This document shows positions 3,725 to 64,000 of a stretch of 64,000 bases of DNA, piece after piece. This DNA comes from Octopus sinensis (taxonomy: Eukaryota). Within the stretch, counting starts at the first letter, position 1, and every line of letters starts with the position of its first letter. The stretch is taken from positions 11,222,001 through 11,286,000 of the forward strand of contig NC_043018.1 of NCBI RefSeq assembly GCF_006345805.1. The letters are read 5' to 3'. A program made the translations under genes and the position numbers. The notes beneath the pieces are model-generated. The model did no database searches, was not told where the DNA came from, and worked only from the letters and a program-made list of their open reading frames with translations.

Positions 3725-4598
3725 GTCTGGTCAATAAGTATCCACGCTGTTGCCATAGTAACAAAGCTAAAGCATGCAAAGTGAAACCACTTGGCACAGA
3801 TTGACCTTGACCTCTGTTATGCATTAAATTTTAATGTTCTGGCTCACTTCTGCTGTTTACAGCAGTGCTTCGAAGTAACATGTGTAACATGCAATCGTCA
3901 CATTGACCATGACAGAGGAAGTTGTCATGGCGATACCTGCTCAGAGGCCTATGCAAAGTTGCAGAAAGTGTGTGGAGAGGAGTGTATTAGACGCACACAG
4001 GTGTACAAGTGGTTCAGATGTTTCCAAGATGGCCAAGAAAAAAAATGTCAATATTGATGAATGTTCTGGGAGACCCACAACCAGCAGAACTGCGAAAAAC
4101 ATCGCAGATATGCGTGCAGCTGTGAAGGGAAATCATTGAATCACCATCCATGAGTTATCAGAGGATGCACAGATTAGTTACAGTTGAGTTCAGTCCATTA
4201 TCACTGAAGATTTGGCTATGAGACATGTGTCTGCCAAGTTTGTGCCAAAACTGCTTTCAGCTGACCAAAAAGACACTCAGGTTTCAGTTACAAAAATCAT
4301 CTTGATTGTGTCAAGAACATTGAAAACTTTTTGTAAACCTTGCGTAGGCTACTGAGCAGATATCGCCAAGCTTTTGGCAAAATTTGATGTACATTCTCTG
4401 CTCAACTTTCTCTGTCACGGTCAATGCAATGAACTCATTACTTCCAAGCACTGCTACAAACAGTGGAAGTGAGCTAGAATGTTAAAACTTATTGCATATG
4501 AACAGCAGAGTTCAAGGTCAATCTGTGCCAAGCGGCTTCACTGTGCATGCTTTAGCTTCCTTACTATGGCAACAATCTGGATACTTATTGATCTGACT
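3721..4598 (+). mobile_element. Non-autonomous mariner built from two left ends (copy 1), inserted in a TA/TG microsatellite
   Basis: ~260-bp inverted arms (ggtctggtcaataagtatcc ... ggatacttattgatctgac); internal HTH fragment (GDTCSEAYAKLQKVCGEEC...QVYKWFRCFQDG; DECSGRPTTSRT; gtctgccaagtttgtgccaaaactgc = VSAKFVPKLL). Confidence 0.9.
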
Positions 4599-4746
4599 AT
4601 ATGTTTATATATATATATGTATGTGTGTGTCTGTGTATATGTTTATGTTTGTGTATATGTTTATGTAATATGTATGTGTATGTATATATATATGTGTGTG
4701 TGTGTATATGTTTATGTAATATGTATGTGTATATATATATATATAG

Positions 4747-4960
4747 TTAATCCAAACAAAAAAACACAGAAAAAACACAGCAACGCGAGGACGTGGAACA
4801 ATTAAAGTATTATTTGACGCTCAGGAAAGAAGGGAAGGAGGGTTTAACGTTTCGAGCGGAGCTCTTCATCGGAAACAAGGAGAAGGAAAGATCCCGAGAA
4901 GGGAAGACAGAGGAAAAAAATATTTTTGCTGGTGGTGCTCAAGAGATCACATATATATAT
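4747..4960 (-). mobile_element. Penelope-like element terminal-repeat remnant between (TA)n tracts
   Basis: CpG-rich insert carrying a hammerhead-like core, which is characteristic of PLE pseudo-LTRs; family assignment is an inference. Confidence 0.6.
4842..4876 (-). ncRNA. Minimal type I hammerhead ribozyme, variant core (CCGAUGA)
   Basis: Minus strand reads GUUU-CCGAUGA-A-GAGC-UCC-GCUC-GAAA-CGUU-AAAC: stem I GUUU/AAAC, stem II GAGC/GCUC, palindromic ACGU at stem III. Confidence 0.6.
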
Positions 4961-6103: not shown

Positions 6104-6988
6104 AGGGTCATATTTAAAATTCAGTTTGAATGAGGAGCCATAAAAGCATAAGTACCCTGTAATGATTAATATTTATAGTCATTGTATATCTTATAGATTT
6201 GACTGTGTGGTAAGAAGTTTGCTACCCAACCACATGGTCCTGGGTTCAGTCCCACTGTGTGGCACCTTTTTTAAGGTTTTTCATCTTTTCTGGATGAAGA
6301 ACAAGAGCGGGAGCGAGATAGACAGAGAAGAGATAGAAGAGTGTGCCTCTCCCACCTTTCCCTATTCTTCTCCTCTCCTCTTCACTGTTCCCTCTTTCTC
6401 ACTCTTCCTCACTGACTCTCGTTGCTGACATGTGACAAAAGGGAATCTCTCTTTCTACCCATTTCCTTCCTAAAGACAACACATGCTTATACCTGTCTCC
6501 TCTCATAAGCTCATCTTCCTAGCATTCATAATAATTTTTCTATCGTCTTGGCTTAACAGCCCTCACTGTTTGTTTTTACTGTCTTCTTCTTACTATCCTG
6601 TTCTTGTTACCACTTTTACCCTCCACAAAAAATCCCAAATTTTATTTAATTTGCTTTGCTGGAAGTACTGTTTCAACGAAGTCGCGTATTGTCCTTGCCT
6701 TCGTAATGCGGAGTAGATGAAACAGAGATAACTGATGAAGGAGAATATTCTTTATGTTGCATGTCTCATTTCTCTGTTTTTTTCGTTGTTCGAAAAAAAG
6801 TTCGTTTTCTATGTTTTTGTTTCTCATTGTGTTCAACGTTTTTTTGATGTCCTGTACCCATATATGCATGTATATATACATATATATGTAGATATGTACA
6901 TAAATGTATGTATATATGCATATATATTTATATATTTATATTATTATATGATCGAACGCCATGCAGCCTTTCCCAATTAAGTTTTATC

Positions 6989-7058
<70 letters not shown>

Positions 7059-7069
7059 CACACACACAT

Positions 7070-7648
<579 letters not shown>

Positions 7649-10614: not shown

Positions 10615-11563
10615 CAGGGGTCACCAAACTTTTTTCATGGTGGACCAGATAACTGAGAGAACGACAAGCATGGGCCAAATAACCATTTTGCTCAATACCA
10701 TACAGTACAATACAGAAATCGAAATCAAATTCAATGACTGGCATCCGTGCTAGTGGAGCACTAAGAGCACCATCCAAGCGTGATCGTTGCCAGAGCAGCT
10801 AACTGGCTTCTCTGCCGGTGGCACATAAAAAACACCATTCGAGCTTGATCGTTACCAGTGTCGCCTTACTGGCACTTGTGCTGGTGGCACGTAAAGAAAA
10901 ACATTTGAGCATGGCCGTTGCCAGTATTGCCTGACTGGCCCTTGTACCGGTGGCACGTAAAAGCACCCACTACACTCTCAGAGTGGTTGGCGTTAGGAAG
11001 GGCATCCAGCTGTAGAAACTCTGCCAGATCAAGATTGGAGCCTGGTGCAGCCATCTGGTTCGCCAGTCCTCAGTTAAATCGTCCAACCCATGCTAGCATG
11101 GAAAGCAGACGTTAAACAATGATAATGATGATAATGAATACAGTGAATACACAAAAAATGAAGACAGACAACATATCTACTTATCAAAATGTTATGAAAG
11201 AAGGTGATGTTAGCAATAACATGGTTACATCACACTCAGTGTGCACATAGCTGAATCTCACAAACTAAGCAGCAAAAAAGTTTAGTGAGATTTGTGAAAC
11301 TGGTGTTTAGCTTTTAACCCATCAATATCTGCTCTGGAATTGCTGCATCCAACCAAGAGAATTGCTTTCAAATGTTCATCAGTCAACCTTGTGCTGACTT
11401 TATTTTGCTCACAAACCTATGTTATTCCAAACACTGATGCCTTACCAGAGGTAAATGAACTCTCATTGCAGGTACTTACACAAAGGTACAGTGTGGCAGT
11501 GGGCTGGATGAAATGACCTCGTGGGCCAAATCTGGCCCACAGGCCTTAGTTTGGTGACCCCGG
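10615..11563 (-). mobile_element. Non-autonomous hAT (Charlie/SPIN-like) element with a transposase C-terminal remnant and a nested RTE tail
   Basis: TIRs caggggtcaccaaact / agtttggtgaccccgg; 8-bp TSD ggttagat / gtttagat (7 of 8 identical); minus strand 11260-11450 encodes ASVFGIT*VCEQ...TDEHLKAILLVGCSNSRADIDGLKAKHQFHKSH*. Confidence 0.85.
10735..11137 (+). mobile_element. RTE 3'-UTR fragment nested in the hAT element
   Basis: Homologous to 22680-23281, including degenerate ggtggcacgtaaa units and the (GAT)n tail. Confidence 0.85.
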
Positions 11564-17274: not shown

Positions 17275-17914
17275 TTAAGAGAAAAAAAAGCAATAATGGA
17301 TTACTTTATGAATCAGATGTTGTTTTTTTTTTTTTGTTGTTGCACTTGTTGTCATATACAGAGGAGCCTTTCTTTTAGTATTTTGGTTTCTGCCCATTTA
17401 GTAGAAAAAAAAGACTTTTGCATTTGAATTTTTTTGCTGCCAGATAATTTTTTAAAACAAGGTCTGTAAAAATGATATCCACTAAAGTGGCTGTAGGAGG
17501 AGGAGGAGGCTCTGGCAGAAGTGGTATTATTATCTAACTTGTTCTGCCAACATTCCTGGCTTTTTGTTGTCAACTCTTAGCTGTTTTTATTTTTTTTTAA
17601 AGTTGGGGGTATTTTTATTCCTTTAAACTGTACATAAGAAATGTAAAAAAAAAACACCACCAAATTTTCGTTCAGATAGTTTCATTTGAAGAGGTGAAAA
17701 TAACATTCAGATACTCACACACACACACACACATGTGCACACACATAATGTAGCAGACAACTAAAATAATTTACAGGAAGAACACAAAAGACATACGAAA
17801 GGACACAAACATGCTCTTCTCCTTATCGGTTGTCAAACATCATCACAATTTCACCATGCACATATACATGCATGTGTGTGTGTGTATGTATGTATACTTA
17901 CAAAAATACATGCA

Positions 17915-17956
<42 letters not shown>

Positions 17957-20164: not shown

Positions 20165-20344
20165 AAGGGCAGCTGAGTGGTAAGTAGCTTGCTTACCAAC
20201 CACATGGTTCCGGGTTCAGTCCCACTGCATGGCACCTTGGGCAAGTGACTTCTACTATAGCCTCAGGCTAACCAAAGCCTTGTGAGTGGATTTGGTAGAC
20301 AGAAACTGAAAGAAGCCTGTCGTATACATGAATATATATATATG

Positions 20345-20393
<49 letters not shown>

Positions 20394-20642
20394 GTATGGA
20401 AAACGGACGCTAAACGATGATGATGATGATGATGATGTATATGTTTGTGTGTCTGTGTTTATCCCCCCAACATCGCTTGACAACCAATGCTGGTGTGTTT
20501 ATATCCCCGTAACCTAGCGGTTCAGCAAAAGAGACTGATAGAATAAGTACTAGGCTCACAAAGAGTAAGTCCTGGGGTCGAATTGCTTGACTAAAGGTGG
20601 TGCTCCAGCATGGCCACAGTCAAATTACTGAAACAAGTAAAA
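20165..20642 (+). mobile_element. CORE-type SINE with a small RTE tail inside its internal microsatellite
   Basis: Head and CORE (ggcaccttgggcaagtgacttc), (TA)n, ggaaaacggacgctaaacgatgatgat at 20398-20438, then the SINE tail. Confidence 0.85.
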
Positions 20643-21599
20643 AAAGGAGCATGAACATGAGAAATATCATTCATATTTGCCTCAAATTAATTCCATCATT
20701 AAAATTTTGTGTCCTTATTCCATGCTGAGATGGATAGGACAGTTTGACAGGATCCAACAATCTCGAGAACTAGATTATGCTCCATAATCAACTCTTAACT
20801 CTGACACGGTTTCTACAACTGGATGCCCTTCCTAACTCCAACCACTTTACAGTGTGTACTGGGTGCTCTTTCTCTTTTTGTGACACCAGCATCAGTGAGG
20901 TCGCAAAAACCATGGACCTTGACAGAGGTAGCTTTATGCTGGAGCAGAATGATTTCTTGCTGTAGCAGAGCTACATGGCTTTTCACGATTTAGGAGAGAG
21001 GGTGGGGATGATTGAAGTACAACTGAGGAGAGATAAAAATAGTGGTAATGAGGGTGTTTGTGTGGACCCTCATGGTATGAGGTGAATAGGAGGGAATGGG
21101 AAAAATGGAATATATGTTGTCAGAATAAAGATGGGAACAGTGGCGGCATCATCTTTGATTTGGACTCAGCTCAGTCAAAAAATGACCTGGGGCTATATCT
21201 TCATATGTATTTGAATAAAAGACAACCTAAACTACTCCAATATAAACAGGGACCGTCTTTGATCCCTGTTTCACTGACACAATAAGCTACCCCTGGAAAT
21301 GGAGATTTAAAAGAATTTTTTTTTTTTACTGCAATCAGAAGAAATATTGAGCTCTGGCTTAGAACTCCAATCTGTCTTTTAACAATTCTGAAACTGGCTC
21401 TTTTCCAGCTGACCATGTTGTATTTTAGGTCAATAGTTCTTAAACTGCAAAAATAAAATTCATTTAACAAAAATAAAAAAATACAAGCTGAAATTCACGT
21501 TGCTCCAGTTCACCCAGCTGTAGAAATGAAGAAATGAGTTGTGATGTCACTGGTGCCAAACAGTATCACCCTTTGCCTTTTTCTTGGATAACATCGGTG

Positions 21600-23281
21600 A
21601 AGTTCCAGGTGTGGAAGGAGGGATTAGAATCGAGGGGCCTTAGAGTCAACTTAACTAAAACCAAAGTACTAATAAGTAGGAAGGTAGACAAACCACAAAT
21701 GCCATCAGGTAGATTGTCCTGCTCGATCTGTAGAAAAGGTGTAAGTAGAAACTCTATAAGATGTACCCAGTGTAAGCTATGGACACATAAGAGGTGCAGC
21801 AATGTCAAAGGAAGGCTAACTGGGAAGATAGTTTTTGTATGTGGCAGATGCTCAGGAGCAATAAACTCTGAAAATCTGCAGAAAACAACTTCTGTCACTT
21901 TCCAGGGGGAAAAACTAAAAGTAGTTGATAGCTTCCGTTATCTAGGTGACCAAGTCAGTAGTGGGGGTGGGTGTGCTGAAAGTGTAACTGCTAGAGTAAG
22001 AATAGCCTGGGCAAAGTTCAGGGAGCTCTTACCTCTGCTGGTGACTAAAGGCCTCTCACTCAGAGTAAAAGGCAGACTGTATGATGCATGTGTACGAACA
22101 GCCATGCTACATGGCAGTGAAACATGGGCCATGACTGCTGAGGACATGCGTAAGCTCGCGAGGAATGAAGCCAGTATGCTCCGATGGATGTGTAATGTCA
22201 GTGTGCATACTCGACAGTGTTAGTACCTTGAGAGAAATGTTGGACCTAAGAAGCATCAGCTGTGGTGTGCAAGAGAGACGATTGCGCTGGTATGGATGAA
22301 GATAGGTGTGTGAAAAAGTTCCAATCCCTAGCAGTTGAGGGAACCCGTGGAAGAGATAGACCCAGGAAAACCTGGGACGAGGTGGTGAAGCACGACCTTC
22401 GAACTTTAGGCCTCACCAAGGCAATGACCAGCGACCGAGACCTTTGGAAATATGCTGTGTGTGAGAAGACCAGACAGGACAAGTGAGTCCAGCCCACTTA
22501 TGCATGTCTTTCCTCCCTTGGGCACACAAAGACCTGTTGAGGCAAGCGAAGTCGAAATTGAACCTCATCCGACGACAGGCACCCATGCCAACCTCCCTTC
22601 ATTGGACACTAAACTCTGCTTGAGAAGACCTGTTGGGGCAAGTGAAATCGAAATCGGAATCGAAATTGAACCAATCCTATGACTGGCACCCAGCAGTTGC
22701 CAGGACCGCTGGACTGACTCCTGTGCAGGTGGCAAGTGAAGAAACACCATTTCGACCCTGTGCTTGAGGAGATCCATTGAGTCAAGTACACCGACATCAA
22801 AATCAATGGAAACTGCAGTTGTGATCCCTGAGCCGGTGGCACGTAAACAGCACCATCTGAAGGTGGCGATGCCAGCGCCGCCTAGACTGGCTTCCATGCC
22901 GGTGGCACGTAAAAAGCGCTATCCGAATCGTGGCCGATGCCAGCGTCGTCTCGACTGGCTTCCGTGCCGGTGGCACGTAAAAAGCACCATCCGAATCGTG
23001 GCCGATGCCAGTGCCGCCTCGACTGGCTTCCGTGCTGGTGGCACGTAAAATGCACCAATCCGACCGTGGCCGTTGCCAGCCTCACCTGGCACCTGTGCAG
23101 TTGGCACGTAAAAAGCACCCACTACACTCACGGAGTGGTTAGCGTTAGGAAGAGCATCCAGCTGTAGAAACACTGCCAGATCAGACTGGAGCCTGGTGCA
23201 GCCTTCTGGCTTCCCAGATCCCCAGTCGAACCATCCAAACCATGCTAGCATGGAGAACGGACGTTAAACGATGATGATGAT
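21600..23281 (+). mobile_element. 5'-truncated RTE-clade LINE: post-RT ORF portion with PHD-like finger, long 3' UTR and (GAT)n tail
   Basis: ORF 21534-22223: WKEGLESRGLRVNLTKTKVL...FRYLGDQV...KGRLYDACVRTAMLHGSETW; continues frameshifted (22262-22486) as GRDRPRKTWDEVVKHDL...DRDLWK. Confidence 0.93.
22832..23120 (+). repeat. Tandem array of 63-68-bp units in the RTE 3' UTR
   Basis: The gccggtggcacgtaaa motif recurs at 22832, 22898, 22966, 23034 and 23097. Confidence 0.9.
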
Positions 23282-44631: not shown

Positions 44632-44721
44632 ATGGGTTATGAAGTTGTCAGATTTCAGGGGGATGTTGATGAAGAATTGATTTGTGCTATTTGCAGTGGA
44701 GTCCTTGAGGATCCACTCCAG
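44632..44721 (+). CDS. RNF41: E3 ubiquitin-protein ligase NRDP1/RNF41, first coding exon (exon 44621-44721; start of the RING finger)
   Basis: MGYEVVRFQGDVDEELICAICSGVLEDPLQ versus human RNF41 as recalled, MGYDVTRFQGDVDEDLICPICSGVLEEPVQ; acceptor tttcttttttccccattag|, phase-0 donor CAG|gtaagt; too short for the ORF track. Confidence 0.93.
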
Positions 44722-45269
44722 GTAAGTTAATTAACCAAAAATATTCAGTTTGTCCCTCATTCCACTGAATGGCTCATCCATTCTCATTACACTTTTGTTG
44801 TTTCAGAATATTTTCTTTTATTGAACGTTGTTTTTTTTTTATCATGTTCCCATATTTATATCACTCATCATCATAATTTAAAATCCACTTTTCCATGCTG
44901 GCATGGGTTGGACAGAGTTTGTTGCCAGAGATTTTCTATGTCCAGATGTCCTTTCTGTTGCCAACCCTAACGTATTTCTAAGTTAATGCTTCCCTATACC
45001 AAGGTATGTTCCTCAAGAAAGACTGGAAACGAACAGCCTCACCTGTATGACAATGATGATCGTTTACAACCATCACGTGATGTCTAGACAAAAGCACACA
45101 CACACATACTCACCACTTCTTTATGTTTCCGTCTACCAAATCTATTTATAAGAGTTTCATCAGCCTGGGCCTAAGGTGCGCATGGTTAGGAAGCAACATT
45201 TTAAACTACACACCAATACCTACACTTTCATCATCTCTCTACACACATAACACTTTTTGTACATGTCAT

Positions 45270-45540
45270 GGTGAAAACATGGCTCAGTGGTTAGAGTGTT
45301 GAGTTCACAATGATGAGGTAGTGAATTCAATTCTCGGACGGGGTTGTGTACTGCGTTCTTGAGCAAGATACTTTATTTCACATTGCTCCAGTTCACTCAT
45401 CTCTAGAAATGAGTTGCAGCATCACTGATGCCAAGCTGTGTCAGCCTTTGCCTTTCCTTTGGATAACATCAGTGGCATGCAGAGTGGAGGCTGGTATGCA
45501 TGGTTGACTGTGTTGGTCTTCCATAAACAACTTTGCTTGG
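45270..45540 (+). mobile_element. tRNA-derived SINE abutting the CR1-like insertion
   Basis: tggctcagtggttagagtg head, gtgaattcaattctc B box, cttgagcaagatacttt CORE-like block. Confidence 0.75.
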
Positions 45541-45544
45541 ACCT

Positions 45545-46675
45545 AAAGCTTTTGACTCGGTAAACCACCGCCTATTACTTGTCAAGCTTCAAGCATATAG
45601 TTTCCATCCGGATATTGTACGATGGGTTGGTGCCTTCCTCTCAGATCTGTCCTTCCAAGTCCAAGTTAATGGTTCGCGGTCCGACGTCTCCAGCGCGAGC
45701 AGTGGCGTGCCTCAAGGTTCAGTGCTTGGGCCCTTGTTGTTCTTAGTCTTCATAAATGACTTGCCCGACGACCTCACGCAACACACCCTTCTATTTGCCG
45801 ACGATATCAAACTGGTCGCTCCTCGCGGTAATATAGAGGATCTTCGTCGATGCCTCCACCAAATTTGGAAGTGGTCTAATGATTGGGACCTGTGTCTGAA
45901 CGTGTCAAAGTGCTGTCATCTGCCTGTCGGCTCTACTCCTGCAACTCAACTTGATTTTGAGCCGGGTCGTCTGCTGCTGGAGAGGACCGATCAGGTAAAG
46001 GACCTAGGTATCTTGGTGGATTCCTCCTTTTCGCCTTCGGCCCAGTGCGTCCATGCTGCCAACAAAGCACGCGGAATTCTGTTCTTGATTCGACGGTCAT
46101 TCGGAATGCTCACGGCAGCCATATTCCTACCACTCTATGTCACGCTGGTGAGACCCATATTGGAGTATGGGATTCAAGCCTCTTCTCCTTATCTCCTCAA
46201 AGACATACAGCATCTCGAAAGAGTCCAGAAGCTGGCTACCCGCATGGTTCATGGTCTCAAAAATTTGTCCTACGAAGAAAGGCTGAGGACGCTCGACCTT
46301 TATTCTCTTGAAAAACGCCGCCGCCGTGGTGATCTCATTCTCGCCCACAACATCATAAGCGGAAAGTGTAACCTCTCGAAAGAGCTGTTCTTCACTCCTG
46401 CACCAGAGCGTCGGCTGCGGGGTCATTCCGAAAAGCTCTACCTGCGACGATTTCATCTCAATCAAAGGAGAGGAGCTTTCTCCGTCCGGGTTGCGGATCC
46501 GTGGAACAAGCTGCCAGACGAGATGGCGAAGATGCCGACGACCGCTTTGTTCAAAGCCTCCCTGGACCTCAAGTGGCCTGAACTCTTTACATGAACACCA
46601 CCCTGTACTTAACTCCATGTCCCCCTACATGGCCTTGCTATTTGCTTTTGAGCCAAATTAACTAACTAACTAATT
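45545..46675 (+). mobile_element. 5'-truncated CR1-like LINE with an open RT C-terminal frame and an (AACT)n tail
   Basis: ORF 45533-46594: KAFDSV...SGVPQGSVLGPLLFLVFINDL...LFADDIKL...KDLGILVD...LVRPILEY...LERVQKLATR...RRRRGDLI...FSVRVADPWNKLP; tail aactaactaactaa. Confidence 0.93.
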
Positions 46676-47597
46676 AACATGTTAACATTTACCCTTTTTA
46701 CTCATCATTATATATACTGCATTATTAGTCTGTATACACTTTACTTAGCCTTTTAAAACATTTAAAAAAATTATTGTTAGCTCAACGTTTTTAATGAGAA
46801 AATGTTGAGTTTGACGAAATTTGTTTCTATTTAGAGTAGAAAGACTAAAACTAATTTTGATTGTCTTCTGATTAGGCTCAAAGCTAATTTTTGTAAAGAG
46901 TTGAAATTGTTATCTGGAAACGCTGTATGTATATAAAGCAAGTGTTTAAGGGAAAGAGCAAAGCTGACTGTCCTAGGCAGTAAACTAAAACAAAGCCAAA
47001 ATTACGTTTGTGAAATTTAAATTGGAACTCGGAGAGTGGCAGCTAAATCCAGTCAAAACATTTAGTCCAACAGTCTTTTGAATGACCTTGAAAAAAAAAT
47101 GCTTATTTCTTATCTAAGACACAGCAAATTTGTGACGCCAAGAGAAACATTGTTGATCCTTAATTTATCAACGCTCTAGAAGAAGAAGAAGAATTAAGTT
47201 AGCCTTGCTGTGATTTAAGTTTTGAAAGATGGACGAAATCGAACACAGTAAATATATTGAATGTGGCCAAGCTCTGTCTCTGTATATCTATGATGAAAGT
47301 GGATAAATATATATGTAAATAGAAACCAAATATGCCTGCAAAAAGTTAGAACTGGCGATAGTGTGTGCAAGGTTCAGGGGAGGTAATTCAAGTTGACTCT
47401 AGTGAAGCTTTCTTGGCCTGCGCTACAGCCTCAACTTTATTAAAGTCATCTTTCTCCCGTTATATATATGTGTGTGTGTATATATATATATAATATATAT
47501 ATATATATATGTAGTAAAGTTTCTTTGTTTATTGTATAGGTTAGTAGTTTGAAGTGCTCAGATAAAAAACCCGAGGCACAAAGGTATAAAAAATGTA

Positions 47598-48065
47598 AAG
47601 GAGAATTTCAGACAAGCTCAACAATTTAAATAAGCATATATGCTGCCATGGATCGATGTATATCAGTTTTTAAATATACCAAGGTATCAGTCATTAAAAT
47701 ATTAAGACATATTCAAAAGCATAAATTTTTAAAAATTAAATATGCATATATAAATAGATGAGTGAAGTTAGGTTGTAAAAGTATGGATGTATAAAAATAT
47801 ATTTAGAATTTCAGACGTATTAAACGCCTTTTAATATGACTGAAATTCTAAATATATTTTTATACATCTATACTTTTACAACCTAACTTCACTCATCTAT
47901 TTATATATGTATATTTAATTTTTATATATTTATGCTTTCATAGATTTTTAATATGTCTTAATATTTTAATGACTGATACATTCGTATATTTAAAAACTGA
48001 TACACATCGATCCATGGCAGAATATAGGCTTATTTAAATTGTTGAGCCTGTCTGAAATTCTCCTT
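47598..48065. repeat. ~470-bp near-perfect fold-back (long inverted repeat with a 7-nt loop)
   Basis: Left arm aaggagaatttcagac...tcagacgtattaa (47598-47823) pairs with right arm ttaatatgactga...gtctgaaattctcctt (47831-48065), with scattered mismatches. Confidence 0.93.
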
Positions 48066-48066
48066 A

Positions 48067-48100
<34 letters not shown>

Positions 48101-48204
48101 GTATACATACATATACACACACACACACACACACACATACATACATGAAATTAATCTGTGTAAAAATCAATAAGAAGAGTACTCCATCTAATGAGAGTCT
48201 AATC

Positions 48205-48505
48205 ATCATTATCGTTTAACGTCTGCTTTCCATGCTAGCATGGGTTGGACGATTTGACTGGCGAACCAGATGGCTGCACCAGGCTCCAATCTGATCTGGC
48301 AGTTTCTACAACTGGATGCCCTTCCTAATGCCAACCACTCCAAGAGTGTAGTGGGTGCTTTTACGTGCCACCGGCACAAGGGCCAGTCAGACAGTACTGG
48401 CAACAGCTACGCTCAACTGGTGTTTTTTACGTGTCACCTGCACAGGAGCCAGTCCAGCGGCACTGGCAATGACCTCGCCCAAAATGTCTTTTCAAGTGCC
48501 AGTAG
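48205..48505 (-). mobile_element. RTE 3'-UTR/tail fragment
   Basis: Reverse-complement match to 23030-23281. Confidence 0.85.
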
Positions 48506-48650
48506 CAATTTATATAATTTTTCTTTTTGGTTTTTTTATTATCCATTTACCCATCTTGGTGGAATCTTCCATTAGGTACATTTTGCTTTCGAATCACTTC
48601 ACACCTGTCCTCTATTTAAATGTATACCTCTTGGTTGCATAGTTCAATCA

Positions 48651-48694
48651 GCACCTGATGAATGTACTTATGTACGTGAAACTGTTAGTAGTGC
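48651..48694 (+). ncRNA. Minimal type I hammerhead ribozyme with canonical core, sense to the RNF41 intron
   Basis: GCAC-CUGAUGA-AUGUAC-UUAU-GUACGU-GAAA-CU-GUU-AG-UA-GUGC: stem I GCAC/GUGC, stem II AUGUAC/GUACGU (one G-U), stem III ACU/AGU, GUA cleavage triplet ending at 48690. Confidence 0.82.
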
Positions 48695-48717
48695 ATTAAT
48701 GCATGTATATATATATG

Positions 48718-48822
48718 TAGGTGCAATGGCCCAGTGGTTAAGGCAGCGGACTCGCGGTCATAGGATCGCGGTTTGATTCCCAGACCGGGTGTTGTGAGTG
48801 TTTATTGAGCGAAAACTTTAAG
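48718..48822 (+). mobile_element. tRNA-Arg-derived SINE head (truncated)
   Basis: ggtgcaatggcccagtggttaaggcagcggactcgcggtc...gtttgattcccagaccggg; same family as 13880-14052. Confidence 0.75.
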
Positions 48823-50329: not shown

Positions 50330-51650
50330 GGTGTTGCTGTATGATAAGAAGTTTGCTTCCCAACCACATGGATGCAGGTTCAGTCCTACTGTGTGGCAAC
50401 TTGGGCAAATGTCTTCTACTATAGTCTTTGGGTGAAAAAAACCTTGTGAGTGGATTTGGTGGATGGAAACTGAAAGAAGCCTGTCATGTGTGTGTGTAAA
50501 TATATATATATATATATGTGTATGTATGTATGTATTTATGCATATTTATATATATGTGGCCTGATCAATAAGTATCCGGACTGTTGCCATATGAACAAAA
50601 CTAAAGCACACAGAGTGAAGCTGCTTGGCACAGATTGACCTTGGACTCTGCTGTTCATATGCAATAAGTTTTAACATTCTAGTTCACTTCCACTGTTTGC
50701 AGCAGTGCTTGGAAGGAAGGTGTGTAGCATGTGATTGTCACATTGACCATGACAGAGAAAGTTGAGCAGAGAATGTGCATCAAATTTTGCCAAAAGCTTG
50801 GCGATATCTGCTCAGTAGCCTACGCAAGGTTTACAAAAAGTTTTCATTGTTCTCAACACAATCAAGATCTTGTGCAACTGAAACCCGAGTGTCTTTTTGG
50901 TCAGCTGAAAGCAGTTTTGGCACAAACTTGGCAGACGTGCGCCTCATAGCCAAATCTTCAGTGATAATGAACTGAACTGAATCGTAACTAATCTGCATAT
51001 TCTCTGATGACTCATGGTTGGTGATTCAACGATTTTCCCTCACAGCTGCATGCACATCTATGATGTTTTCCTCAGTTCTGCTGGTTGTGGGTCTCCTAGA
51101 ATGTTCGTCAATATCATAATTTTCTCAGCCACCTTGGAAACGGCTGAACCACTCATACACTTGCATGCAGCTCATTCACTCCTCTCCATCCACTTTGGAT
51201 AGGCCTCTGAGCAGGTATCACCATGACAACTTTCTCTGTCATGGTCAATGTGACTATCACATGCTACACACCTTCCTTCCAAGCACTGCTGTAAACAGCA
51301 GAAGTGAGCTAGAATGTTAAAACTTTGTTGCAATGCACAGCAGAGTTCAAGGTCAATCTGTGCCAAGCGGCTTCACTCTGTATGCTTTAGCTTTGTTACT
51401 ATGGCAAGAATCCGGATACTTATTGATCAGACCTCCTCTGTGTGTGTCTTTGTCTCTTTGTTTGTCCCCTCACCACGCTGGTGTGTTTATGTCCCTGTAA
51501 TTTAGTGGTTCAGCAAAAGAGCCTGATAAAATAAGTACCAGGCTTTAAATAATAAGCACTGGGGTCGACTCACTCGATTAAAATCTCGCCAAGGTGGTGC
51601 CCCAGCATGGCCACAGTCTAATGACTGAAACAAGTAAAAGATGAAAGATA
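50330..51650 (+). mobile_element. CORE-type SINE split by a mariner insertion in its internal microsatellite
   Basis: Head and CORE at 50330-50490, (TA)n, mariner at 50555-51434, then the tail at 51440-51650. Confidence 0.85.
50555..51434 (-). mobile_element. Non-autonomous two-left-end mariner (copy 2, opposite orientation)
   Basis: Colinear reverse complement of 3721-4598; left arm encodes MTEKVEQRMCIKFCQKLGDICSVAYA (ORF 50731-50949). Confidence 0.9.
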
Positions 51651-56928: not shown

Positions 56929-57768
56929 TATTGAGTTGAGGAATAATTCATGAGCATTTTTTTTTTCAAATTTATTTTAAACAAAAAAACTACAACAAAT
57001 TAATTAATAATATACTATCTGTTGTTGTTGTTTACGACTTCCTGCTGCTGTTTGTCGATGCCTAAGCAATAGAAATCTCCCGGTCTTGACTCAAAGAATT
57101 TGTCCAGCTGAGCCCTCCATTCCACATCATTATTGAACAATGTACCATGCAAAGTGTTCGAAAGGGATGAAAATCTAATGGTGCCAAGTCTGGAAAGTAT
57201 GGAGGATGAGGTAGCACTTCCCATTGAGTTCTTGAATCGCAGCTTTGGCCATATTGGCGATGTGAACCTTGCAGATTGAGTGAAGGTGGTTCACCACAGT
57301 TTTTTTATCACAATCCATCTGCTCTGCCAATTTCCTGGTCGTTTGACATGATTTTTCATGAAGAAGTTGATTCAGTCTCTCTTCATCGAACTCAGTTAGT
57401 TGACCAGTGTGCGATCCGTTCTTGAGGTAAAAATTCCCATTTTTGAAGTGCGGAAACCAATAGCGGGTGGTACTTTGAGGCATTATTCCTTCTCCATACA
57501 CAACACAAATCTCACAAGCAGCTTCAGTGACTTCGATTAAATGCAAAAAGCAAATGGTGTCAAAAATGCTCAGTTTTGTCCTCTTGATATTCCATTTTAA
57601 TGATCTGAAAATACACAAAAATCAATAAAATTAAAAAATCAAAACACACTAACTTGTAGAGCAAAAAATTCTCTTTTAAGTAACATTAAACATTTTGCCG
57701 ATGCCTTTTATTTCTGTTTGCATTTTTAAATTTGAAAAAAACGCTCATGAATTTTCTTCAAACCAATA
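56929..57768 (-). mobile_element. Internally deleted mariner element
   Basis: TA-flanked TIRs tattgagttgaggaataattcatgagc / gctcatgaattttcttcaaaccaata; ORF 57175-57618 with YWFPHFKNGNF...FDEERLNQLL; C-terminal WRAQLDKFFESRPGDFY. Confidence 0.85.
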
Positions 57769-60469: not shown

Positions 60470-61642
60470 TTAAGGTACGAAATTGGTAGAAACATTAAAG
60501 CATCAGGGAAAATGCTTAGCACCATTTGTTCCAGCTCTTTCAGTTTTTTGTTCAAATCTCATCAAGGTCTGCTTTGCCATTCATCCCTCTGTCAAGTACT
60601 AACCACTCTGAGGTGGTGGTCAACTGAATTGATAGGAAGTTGGGCATACTACTTTGCAGTATTTGTTCCAACACTTTATGGTCTGAGTGCCAAGATGACT
60701 ATGGTGGACTTGTCCCTGTCTAGCTGACAAGCTGGTATCTTGTAAAAATATTAGAAAGAAGGCAACAGGAAAGCACTTAGGTTTTTCCCATGAAAATTCT
60801 AGGATAATAATACAGCCCTTGTCAAGGAAGTCACCAGGAACCATTTTAAAACCTGATGGCAGAGAGAGAGAGATGGATAAGAGTAATGGATATATTCTTT
60901 AAGGTCTGTTAAGAATGGTTGAGTGCAATTTGAGGGAGATTTGCTGCTATTTTTGGTTGATCCAGTAACCATTTAGAGACTATCTTGCCTAGTATTAGAG
61001 ATAGGCGCTGTTGATTGTAGAAAGGAGGAGGGGAAATTGTGGGTGGTAATGTGATCGATGCGATATGGGGAAAATGTGTGAAGCAGAGAATCAGTGATCA
61101 GGTTGTAGATCGACAACGGAATTTTTGATACTTAATATAGCATGTAAGGCTGTTCACACCATAAACCAAAAGTGAATATAACAAACACACACATATACAT
61201 ACATACATACGTATATACATATATATGTATGTATTAATGTTTGTGTGTGTGTGTCTGTATACACATACACAGACTCACATATATATATATCAATATATAT
61301 ATATATATGTATGTATGTATGTAAGTGTTTGAAATGGCTCTCAAGTCTTAGATCAAGTCGCCAGACAAGTACAACTCAGAAAAAAAAGAAAAGTTTTTTT
61401 ATTCTTTTGTACTGACTGAAGGTGACAGGGAGGAGGAGGAGGTAGTAGCAATTGTGTAATAAGTAACTTAGAGTTTATACCTGAGACACTGAAAAGAAGT
61501 AATTGAAAGCTCACACATACGTACACATAAACAGGTCAAACCAGTGGCTCCGAACCATGTTTAGTCTACGCTCCTCCACTCCCCCTCTCACACATGCGTT
61601 AACCATCTGTGTCCTGTGACTCTAATGCAAACTTATATCTGT

Positions 61643-62344: not shown

Positions 62345-63577
62345 TTGGGTTGGCAACTAAGTTCCCGCAGTTTTTTTTTAATTTAAATTTTTTTAAAAGG
62401 TTTAATAAAAAATAACAACTAATTAATCAATAATGTATTCACCCTTGTTGTTTACAACTTCCTCCCAACGGTTGACAAGATTTTCAATACCTCGTTGGTA
62501 GAAATCCCCCGATTTCGACTTGAAAAATTGATCCAACCAAGCTCTCAATTCTGCATCAGTATTGAATGAAACACCATGCATAGCATTTGAAAGAGATCGA
62601 AAGAGGTGGAAATCCATTGGTGCCAAATCAGGAGAGTACGGCGAGTGTGGCAGCACTTCCCAGCCATGCGTTTGAATAGCATATTGGCAATGAGGGCAGG
62701 CGTTGTCGTGCAGCAAAAGAACTCCATGTTGCCAGTTGGTTCTTTTCTCTTGAATAGCCGTGTTGAGTCGTTCCATCTGCTGAACATAGAGTTCCGCGTG
62801 GACCGTTTGGTTCTGTTCAAGCAATTTGTAATGGATAATCCCTTCCCAGTCCCACCATACGCACAACATTGTTATACGCGGATGAAGATCTTATTTCACG
62901 CACGATGTCGCTTGTTTACCGGGGCTCAGCCATTCCTTGCGCTGCTTCATATTGATGTTCAGGCACCATTTTTCATTGCCAGTAACGATTCAGTAAAGAA
63001 ATCGTTGAGTTGAGCGGTGACAAGCAAGCAGACCAGCAGAGATTGTGGCTTGTTGATTTTTGTTGTTATCACCTAAAGCATGCAGAACCCATGCTCCATA
63101 CTTCTAAACCTTTCCCATCGAGTGAAGATGCTTCTCTATAGCAGTGTGGGAGTATTCCATTTTCTCTGCCAGTTCCCTTGTTGTTTGTGCAAAAGTTGGT
63201 TTAATCGCTCTTCATTGAACTCAACTGGACAACCAGAACAAGGTGCATCTTTGAGGTCAAAATTTCCATTTTTGAACTTGGCATACCAATCATGAGCGGT
63301 TCTTTCAGCTATGGCACCCTCTCCATACACAGCACAAATGTCACAAGCAGTTTTTGCAGCCTTAGAACCTTGATTAAAAGCGAAAAGAAGGTGTCAAAAA
63401 TGCTCGTTCTTCTTAACTTGACATTCCATTTTAATGATCTGAAACTAAGCAAATATTAACTAAAATTAACTAGGAAAAAAAAACAAAATATATTCCAAAA
63501 TGATTCAAAAATAGAATTCTTGAAAAAAATAGATTCCAAAATTTAAAAAAACGGTGGGAACTTAGTTGCCAACCCAA
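62345..63577 (-). mobile_element. Near-full-length mariner (DD34D type; TIR resembles the mellifera subfamily), transposase disrupted
   Basis: TA|ttgggttggcaactaagttccc ... gggaacttagttgccaacccaa|TA; WYAKFKNGNFDLKDAPCSG; LCVWWDWEG...LLHDNACPH...HSPYSPDLAPMDFHLF...NNKGEYIID. Confidence 0.93.
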
Positions 63578-64000
63578 TAGAAAAAAGAGTAAAAGAACAA
63601 ATTTTCAGTGTTTTGAGATATGTATGTAAATAGGTATATAGATATATATTTATACATGTTTTTAAAAATATAAGAGTGTATAAAATATTTTTATACACAA
63701 AGAGGAGACCATTGACAAGACTCCTTATATGCTAAAAAGGCCAATTAAAACCCAAACCATGTGAAAAGAGAATTCATGAGTCATGCCAATTATAACACTA
63801 GAACGAACAAAAAATTAGTTAATCCTCAAGATATACTTGCTGTTGTTTTCCTGATGGCACCCCTGTGACCCCATTGAGAGCCCATGGCACAGTATGGTCA
63901 AGCCTCAATTATAGTATTGTCAATAGATTTTTTTATTTTATTTCTTGTGAAGCAAATCTTAGAGATTTTTTTTGTCTTTTATTTTTGGAGTAAATCTTCT

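Follow-up and report, generated by a model that had tools for sequence, protein, structure and literature searches.

Does a complete match to the hammerhead ribozyme consensus in an octopus intron encode a ribozyme that acts on its host gene, or is it a relic of a mobile element, or simply an accident of sequence? This question is raised by a 44-nt motif at positions 48651–48694 (+ strand) of a 64,000-nt stretch of the Octopus sinensis genome (RefSeq assembly GCF_006345805.1, contig NC_043018.1, positions 11,222,001 to 11,286,000 of the forward strand; hereafter “the window”), within the first coding intron of RNF41. The original prediction, made from the letters of the window alone, had read this motif as a remnant of a Penelope-like element (PLE) whose intact core could cut RNF41 pre-mRNA and thereby affect splicing or transcript output. 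The motif does conform to the hammerhead consensus, but the most likely explanation for it is an inert transposon relic or a chance match, and not a role in regulating RNF41. In other words, the motif would be a solitary, complete minimal type I hammerhead motif carried as a passenger in RNF41 intron 1.

The anatomy of the motif (GCACCTGATGAATGTACTTATGTACGTGAAACTGTTAGTAGTGC) is described here in standard hammerhead numbering, with RNA letters read from the + strand. The 5′ strand of helix I (GCAC, 48651–48654, positions 2.4–2.1) pairs with its 3′ strand (GUGC, 48691–48694, positions 1.1–1.4), and encloses in turn the core box CUGAUGA (C3 U4 G5 A6 U7 G8 A9, 48655–48661), which fits the consensus of Perreault et al. 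2011, a 6-bp helix II hairpin (48662–48677; strands AUGUAC at 48662–48667 and GUACGU at 48672–48677, loop UUAU), the GAAA box (G12 A13 A14 A15.1, 48678–48681), a helix III hairpin (ACU, loop GUU, AGU, 48681–48689; pairs A15.1–U16.1, C15.2–G16.2, and U15.3–A16.3), and A17 at 48690, the last letter of a GUA triplet. All 13 core positions are present without substitution (U48689 being U16.1), the junction pairs G1.1–C2.1, A10.1–U11.1, and A15.1–U16.1 are all standard, and the helices span 4, 6, and 3 bp. The motif thus passes the acceptance rules of Perreault et al. 2011, namely an unmutated core and no core-adjacent mispair in any helix. Sequence inspection and a descriptor scan hence bear out the order of elements originally proposed, and hammerhead numbering places the scissile bond at 48690/48691, as had been predicted.

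The label “canonical” that had been given to this anatomy holds overall, with some qualifications. Helix II includes one wobble pair (U10.2·G11.2), its core-adjacent pair is A10.1–U11.1 (A48662–U48677) instead of the usual G–C, and four of its six pairs derive from two GTAC palindromes spaced 8 nt apart. The 3 bp of helix III are reached by counting A15.1–U16.1, and its 3-nt loop, GUU, is of odd length and not palindromic; the helix III regions of two copies of the motif could nevertheless pair into a 9-bp helix with two G·U pairs and a central U × U. Helix I cannot be extended beyond 4 bp: the next pair would be A48650 × A48695, and the mismatches beyond the helix (A × A, C × U, U × U) include no loop 1 or bulge positioned to meet loop 2. 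The pair C15.2–G16.2, on the other hand, is present though the descriptor did not demand it.

This motif is the sole full match among both strands of the window, where our descriptor scan found nothing else comparable, in agreement with the single copy noted originally. To gauge how readily such an arrangement arises by accident, we used a compact descriptor (helices of at least 4, 4, and 3 bp, loops of 3–8 nt) and a loose one (loops of up to 40 nt), together with decoys consisting of all 2519 permutations of the core-box letters, scanned on the real window. The permuted cores gave 0 matches out of 2519 for the compact form, 1 for the loose form, and 43 for a very loose one. Even with up to 2 core mismatches permitted, no partner motif appeared in the window and the 48651–48694 motif remained the only match, as compared to 0.05 per decoy. 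An order-3 Markov model trained on the window was used to generate 1.2 Gb of sequence, in which the compact descriptor matched twice, i.e., 1.7e-9 per base, 2e-4 per window, and ~8 per 2.5-Gb genome, and the loose descriptor 37 times (~150 expected per genome with loops of up to 40 nt); none of this simulated sequence contained a motif as tight as the one observed. A hand calculation from base composition yielded 3e-10 per base for the compact form (~1.5 per genome) and 7.5e-12 for the form as seen. Because hairpins of 6 bp or more are 1.4 times as frequent in the real window as under the Markov null, both the Markov and the hand-calculated figures should be raised, and the overall chance expectation comes to ~4e-5 to 2e-4 per window, or ~2–16 compact motifs per 2.5-Gb genome. 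A single window would not yield such a motif by accident, and a whole genome would yield a few, which agrees with specialist statements on this very small motif.

A match to the consensus is distinct from an RNA that folds accordingly. In nearest-neighbour models, which leave out core tertiary stabilisation and whose numbers are thus indicative only, the hammerhead fold of the 44-mer reaches −6.6 kcal/mol vs −10.6 kcal/mol for the minimum free energy (MFE) structure, in which CUGAU pairs with GUUAG, and the hammerhead fold is 4–6 kcal/mol worse than competing local hairpins. The probability of all three helices forming together was 1.3e-3 for the 44-mer alone and 1.5e-5 to 5e-5 with 10–200 nt of flanking sequence, the pair probabilities in context being 0.011 for helix I, 0.014–0.018 for helix III, and 0.24–0.47 for helix II. 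With at least 10 nt of flank, the MFE structure includes a hairpin at 48644–48661 (+; UCA-AUCAG, loop CAC, CUGAUGA) that sequesters the whole CUGAUGA box, and with flanks a second one at 48691–48704 (+; GUGCA-UUAA-UGCAU) ties up the helix I 3′ strand; this second hairpin is a palindrome visible in the sequence itself (TGCATTAATGCA / GUGCAUUAAUGCAU). As a control, a full-length Schistosoma hammerhead with an engineered helix III yielded the hammerhead structure as its MFE fold.

Within the pre-mRNA, these models suggest that the RNA would rarely adopt the three-way junction, because helices I and III are marginal and the flanking hairpins sequester the helix I 3′ strand as well as CUGAUGA. The motif has none of the helix I/loop 2 tertiary-contact elements that make natural hammerheads fast at cellular Mg2+, minimal hammerheads require non-physiological Mg2+, and a short unstable helix III of this kind needs a dimer. 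Likewise, single PLE hammerheads displayed no detectable cleavage in vitro, and dimers only weak cleavage (PMC4209133), in line with the caveat originally attached to this motif that minimal hammerheads are often weak as monomers. With no loop–loop or bulge–loop contacts and no dimer partner, self-cleavage would be slow at most: an occasional slow cut after A48690, leaving a 2′,3′-cyclic phosphate and a 5′-OH, would be without consequence for RNF41.

If the motif is not a working ribozyme, where might it come from? PLEs represent an obvious candidate, as their terminal repeats always carry hammerheads, which supports the original statement that PLE terminal repeats bear minimal type I hammerheads. 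PLE-rich genomes contain thousands of these, extremely variable and mostly solitary truncated copies, across invertebrates, and in Octopus vulgaris PLEs make up 6.83% of the genome, with 190 families and 336 recently active insertions. PLE hammerheads combine a short helix I (4–5 bp), a long helix II (6–8 bp), and the absence of tertiary contacts. In addition, Cervera and de la Pena 2014 (PMC4209133) described hallmarks that emerged consistently even though their descriptor did not demand them, namely an extra nucleotide between A9 and 10.1, a highly conserved G10.1–C11.1 pair, and a palindromic 15.2–16.2/loop 3 region with helix III tiny or absent, all within covarying families; matches that fell into no family were dropped. 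We fixed this hallmark list before proceeding.

A relaxed scan of the window revealed a second hammerhead-like motif at 4842–4876 on the − strand (GUUU/CCGAUGA/A/GAGC-UCC-GCUC/GAAACGU/U/AAAC), which shows the typical PLE form that the 48651–48694 motif does not. It includes one core change, U4C, a known natural hammerhead variant with reduced in vitro activity, and carries all PLE hallmarks: a bulged A after A9, G10.1–C11.1, an ACGU palindrome in place of helix III, and a helix I of 4 bp. When scanned with a descriptor based on these hallmarks, the window gave this one true match, as compared to 0 in 1500 decoys. The motif lies in a ~200-bp unit (about 4746–4950) with (TA)n on both sides, which fits the preference of some PLE clades for insertion into microsatellites; this unit has no other copy in the window. 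The 4842–4876 motif is probably a genuine PLE relic, and its presence suggests that such relics occur at about one per window here. It also speaks for PLEs in this genome without recourse to octopus repeat statistics.

Measured against the same hallmarks, the 48651–48694 motif shares with PLE minimal hammerheads its type I topology, its helix proportions (4-bp helix I, 6-bp helix II), the lack of helix I/loop 2 contacts, its solitary occurrence, a probably negligible activity as a monomer, and C15.2–G16.2, the helix proportions and C15.2–G16.2 being the only specific features in common. Several observations weigh against descent from a PLE or related retroelement. No additional nucleotide separates A9 from 10.1, since A48662 pairs with U48677 and bulging it out would leave U × U at 10.1–11.1; the 10.1–11.1 pair is A–U and not G–C; helix III is a real 3-bp helix with a non-palindromic triloop, whereas in PLEs it is absent or tiny and palindromic; and the cleavage triplet is GUA instead of the commoner GUC. 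Because the first two of these tested hallmarks are lacking, we did not file the motif in the PLE minimal-hammerhead family. Its surroundings point the same way: the 208-bp patch that holds the motif (48508–48715, +) occurs only once in the window and shares no sequence with the unit around the 4842–4876 relic, and neither a GIY-YIG domain nor a second reverse transcriptase (RT) was found in 36.7–61.1 kb, i.e., within ~12 kb of the motif; a Pfam search of 10 long open reading frames (ORFs) and of every stop-free segment of 55 aa or more in that interval (148 in total) identified only one LINE RT and mariner remnants. Finally, near-miss cores with up to 3 mismatches are not enriched in the window (5 vs 6.4 per decoy), and the number of core-box pairs at the correct spacing is unremarkable (4 vs 2.1 expected). 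Hence, the PLE-remnant origin initially proposed is reasonable on base rates, given the PLE content of O. vulgaris, and is not borne out by hallmarks, flanks, or the search for a second copy.

Would a role in RNF41 expression be suggested by the position of the motif? The assignment of the gene as RNF41 relies on tblastn with a human RNF41 sequence and on a 30-aa exon-1 peptide common to 24 exon-1 read-through ORFs of other invertebrates. The first coding exon, which encodes this peptide, lies at 44633–44722 (+), with a gtaagt donor at 44723. The 48651–48694 motif lies in sense orientation, 3.93 kb from the 5′ end of the first coding intron, which confirms the earlier placement ~3.9 kb past the donor. 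No further RNF41 exon was found up to window position 64000, so that the intron exceeds 19 kb. Searching with the 30-aa peptide joined to 16 conserved human RNF41 residues returned only 24 short invertebrate read-through ORFs, none of which carries the ICAICSG of the window and none of which is from octopus. As a side observation, 24+ database “proteins” of 41–79 aa thus correspond to RNF41 exon 1 read into the intron on short invertebrate contigs, and the same query returned no full-length RNF41 protein.

Within this intron, the patch is bordered by a multi-copy repeat (48202–48501) on one side and a SINE-like head (48716–48816) on the other, and a (TA)5 tract follows the motif 12 nt downstream. 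The head has one other copy in the window and was not called as a tRNA by ARAGORN or Rfam. The earlier description of a unique patch between repeats is therefore accurate within the window, since 48508–48715 has no second copy and both flanks are repeated. An extension of the upstream repeat into the patch was considered and rejected, as alignments end at 48501. The repeat family itself (48202–48501, with further copies at 10778–11132 and 22697–23281, both −) displays internal tandem units of ~66–68 bp (GGTGCTTTTTACGTGCCACCGGCAC...), and the RTE-tail label it had been given could not be confirmed. Exact protein look-ups of the two ORFs that abut the motif (48270–48575 and 48355–48642) returned no match, nor did a homology search with the latter, and exact patterns for each half of the motif had 0 matches in metagenome contigs, as did the first-half pattern in viral contigs.

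Other features of the same intron include a 353-aa ORF in sense orientation (45533–46594, +) that corresponds to the C-terminal half of an RT (RVT_1, E 2e-20), with a FADD motif and a tail that appears LINE-like by eye; it is not a PLE RT and has no GIY-YIG domain nearby. A 476-bp foldback palindrome at 47594–48069 consists of arms of ~235 nt that are 90–94% complementary around a centre near 47827, with (TA)n/(TG)n/(CA)n microsatellites on either side (47461–47513 and 48067–48146). This palindrome has no other copy in the window and includes no hammerhead core.

Covariance models provided a further view of the motif. None of the Rfam hammerhead models (Hammerhead_1, _3, _II, HH9, and HH10) matched at gathering, or even at E ≤ 10, whether run on the 64 kb, 251 nt, or 66 nt. 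As the 4842–4876 relic is also not recognised by Rfam, this silence is uninformative for PLE-type motifs. It does rule out a canonical hammerhead of type I or III complete with its customary peripheral elements. Similarly, Tandem Repeats Finder (TRF) detected no tandem array at 48450–48800, so that the motif is not a retrozyme. A tandem-repeat origin of helix II was rejected on the same TRF result, and the ATGTAC...ATGTAC repeat is weak evidence for it, since every stem of this kind built on a GTAC palindrome will show it twice.

A different small RNA gene, such as a C/D snoRNA or a miRNA precursor, might also mimic a hammerhead core, UGAUGA being also the C box of C/D snoRNAs. The AT/TG-rich hairpins of the region do resemble miRNA precursors, and sub-threshold Rfam matches cover it, namely mir-297 on the + strand over the motif region (22.7 bits, E 0.07) and snR66 (19.9 bits) and sR4 (16.5 bits) on the − strand. 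These scores, however, are far under gathering (90, 65, and 50 bits, respectively), similar mir-297-type matches recur dozens of times on the TG/TA microsatellites of the window, the 3′ end shows CUGU where a D box (CUGA) would be expected, and the 44-nt unit is below snoRNA size. Hence, we rejected both the snoRNA and the miRNA readings as sub-threshold noise, and consider the probability of such a gene here to be next to negligible. More generally, the window is dense in TG/TA/CA microsatellites (e.g., 6856–7073, 17856–17936, 20320–20400, 48067–48146, and 61173–61330), which yield dozens of sub-threshold Rfam miRNA matches (mir-297, mir-3149, and mir-1277, among others; up to 51.6 bits vs 90); these are composition artefacts, not genes.

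Comparison to other known hammerheads helps to delineate what the motif is not. Canonical metazoan type I hammerheads (Schistosoma Sm-alpha, newt satellite 2, and non-LTR retrozymes; RF00163) have the same core, topology, and short unstable helix III, but their helices I and II span 6 and 4 bp and carry conserved loops that interact, which are missing here, and they are Rfam-detectable and arranged in tandem arrays allowing dimers or circular RNAs, neither of which applies to 48651–48694. Metazoan non-LTR retrozymes in particular are 170–400 bp tandem repeats, each with a type I hammerhead, an arrangement that this locus does not show. Cephalopods do have Rfam-type hammerheads, with 235 Hammerhead_1 loci reported in giant squid. 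The avocado sunblotch viroid (ASBVd) and newt double hammerheads share a helix III of 2–3 bp with a small loop, but they find a second copy for dimer formation in the same multimeric transcript, whereas there is one copy at this locus. Engineered minimal trans-cleaving hammerheads similarly consist of the core and three short helices alone, yet their helices are stable and they are assayed at 10 mM Mg2+. The amniote intronic hammerheads (RECK, CTCL, and DTNB; HH9/HH10), to which the original prediction appealed with RECK as its example and of which the literature indeed provides conserved type I examples, closely resemble retroelement hammerheads and are also type I motifs on the sense strand of a protein-gene intron. 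They are, however, ultraconserved and carry the full tertiary-contact architecture, whereas the architecture at 48651–48694 is minimal.

Two explanations account for an inert motif, and the same evidence must be divided between them. The one we tentatively favour, at nearly even chances, is that the motif is a diverged solo copy of a retroelement-borne hammerhead, for which PLEs are the obvious source even though the motif is atypical for them. In its favour, chance would produce the motif in 1 in 5000 windows or more rarely, the PLE base rate is high, a relic is present in the same window, the proportions match those of PLE hammerheads (4-bp helix I, 6-bp helix II, no tertiary contacts), and the (TA)5 tract 12 nt downstream fits the microsatellite preference of some PLE clades. 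Alternatively, and only slightly less probably, the motif is a fortuitous match in a 2.5-Gb, AT-rich, microsatellite-laden genome, with no ribozyme descent and no function. A genome of this size would be expected to contain ~8 compact motifs (Markov) or ~1.5 (hand calculation), and ~150 with loops of up to 40 nt. Specialists likewise expect consensus matches by chance in large databases and regard orphans that lack a family or conservation as likely false positives, and ungroupable matches were discarded by Cervera and de la Pena (PMC4209133). Exactly those hallmarks that separate real PLE hammerheads from noise are missing from the motif, and its unforced features resemble the local composition: A–U at 10.1–11.1, an AU-rich helix II, and within the latter two GTAC palindromes in an ATGTA-rich stretch (ATGTA occurs 4 times in 60 nt). 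The surrounding sequence also prefers other hairpins, and no second copy, tandem partner, or nearby PLE coding remnant was found. Against an accident stand the per-window probability of merely 4e-5 to 2e-4 for a compact motif and ~1e-6 for an equally tight one (6-bp helix II, both loops of at most 4 nt), the ~9% chance of C15.2–G16.2 arising by accident, and the presence in the window of a retroelement hammerhead, a class that is probably orders of magnitude commoner genome-wide than chance motifs. A rough calculation based on our own soft estimates places the likelihood odds for descent at ~1:6 to 17:1, centred near 2:1.

Whichever of these two applies, we hold with high confidence that the motif has no host function. 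A retained intronic ribozyme that cuts RNF41 pre-mRNA co-transcriptionally at 48690/48691 and modulates splicing or output is improbable, although the setting would suit one: the motif is on the sense strand, early in the gene, in an intron of more than 19 kb whose 3′ splice site would be synthesised minutes later, enough for a slow ribozyme; its core is intact, its junction pairs are all Watson–Crick, and conserved intronic type I hammerheads exist in amniotes. Unlike the amniote motifs with their conserved tertiary contacts, however, its 4-bp helix I has no loop or bulge, no Rfam hammerhead model matches the 66-nt sequence even at E ≤ 10, and the predicted occupancy of the active fold in context is ~1e-5. 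A helix III of 3 bp closed by a triloop belongs to the unstable type that depends on dimer formation, for which the window offers no partner, and the patch is wedged between young-looking transposon insertions, with nothing that points to constraint. Cleavage need not alter output in any case, as tethering of exons to RNA polymerase II allows an intron to be spliced even after it has been cut. The proposed effect on RNF41 splicing or output is thus unsupported for a single copy that lacks tertiary contacts, whose helices I and III are marginal, and whose core and helix I face competing hairpins. Less probable still, and in our view very unlikely, is a domesticated cephalopod intronic hammerhead that would be conserved across octopods, active with chaperones or a trans partner, and tuning RNF41.

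Elsewhere in the window, mariner-type transposase remnants were identified at 57175–57618 and 62423–62869 (both −; HTH_48, E 4e-10, and Transposase_1, E 9e-15). A 229-aa ATG-initiated ORF at 21534–22223 (+) displays a weak sub-threshold PHD-finger match (22.9 bits vs a cut-off of 24), and may represent either a fragment of a gene or a domain carried by a transposon. Finally, 3801–4614 and 50542–51356 (−) form an inverted copy pair of ~830 bp with 84% identity, ~46 kb apart, presumably two copies of one transposon family.

Overall, the value of this locus is mostly cautionary. In a genome that is two-thirds repeats and ~7% Penelope-like elements, full agreement with the hammerhead consensus does not in itself constitute evidence of a working or retained ribozyme. 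What discriminates is whether the motif belongs to a family, which hallmarks it shows beyond those set by the descriptor, how its context folds, and whether it is conserved. Within one window, the orphan at 48651 and the relic at 4842–4876 with its full set of hallmarks illustrate this caution by their contrast. Should the motif nevertheless turn out to be a domesticated one, invertebrates would have their first counterpart of the amniote RECK, CTCL, and DTNB ribozymes, with a minimal, contact-free architecture. If active and conserved, the motif would indicate that a bare minimal hammerhead can be co-opted within an invertebrate gene, and would offer a tractable case for the effect of intronic self-cleavage on splicing.

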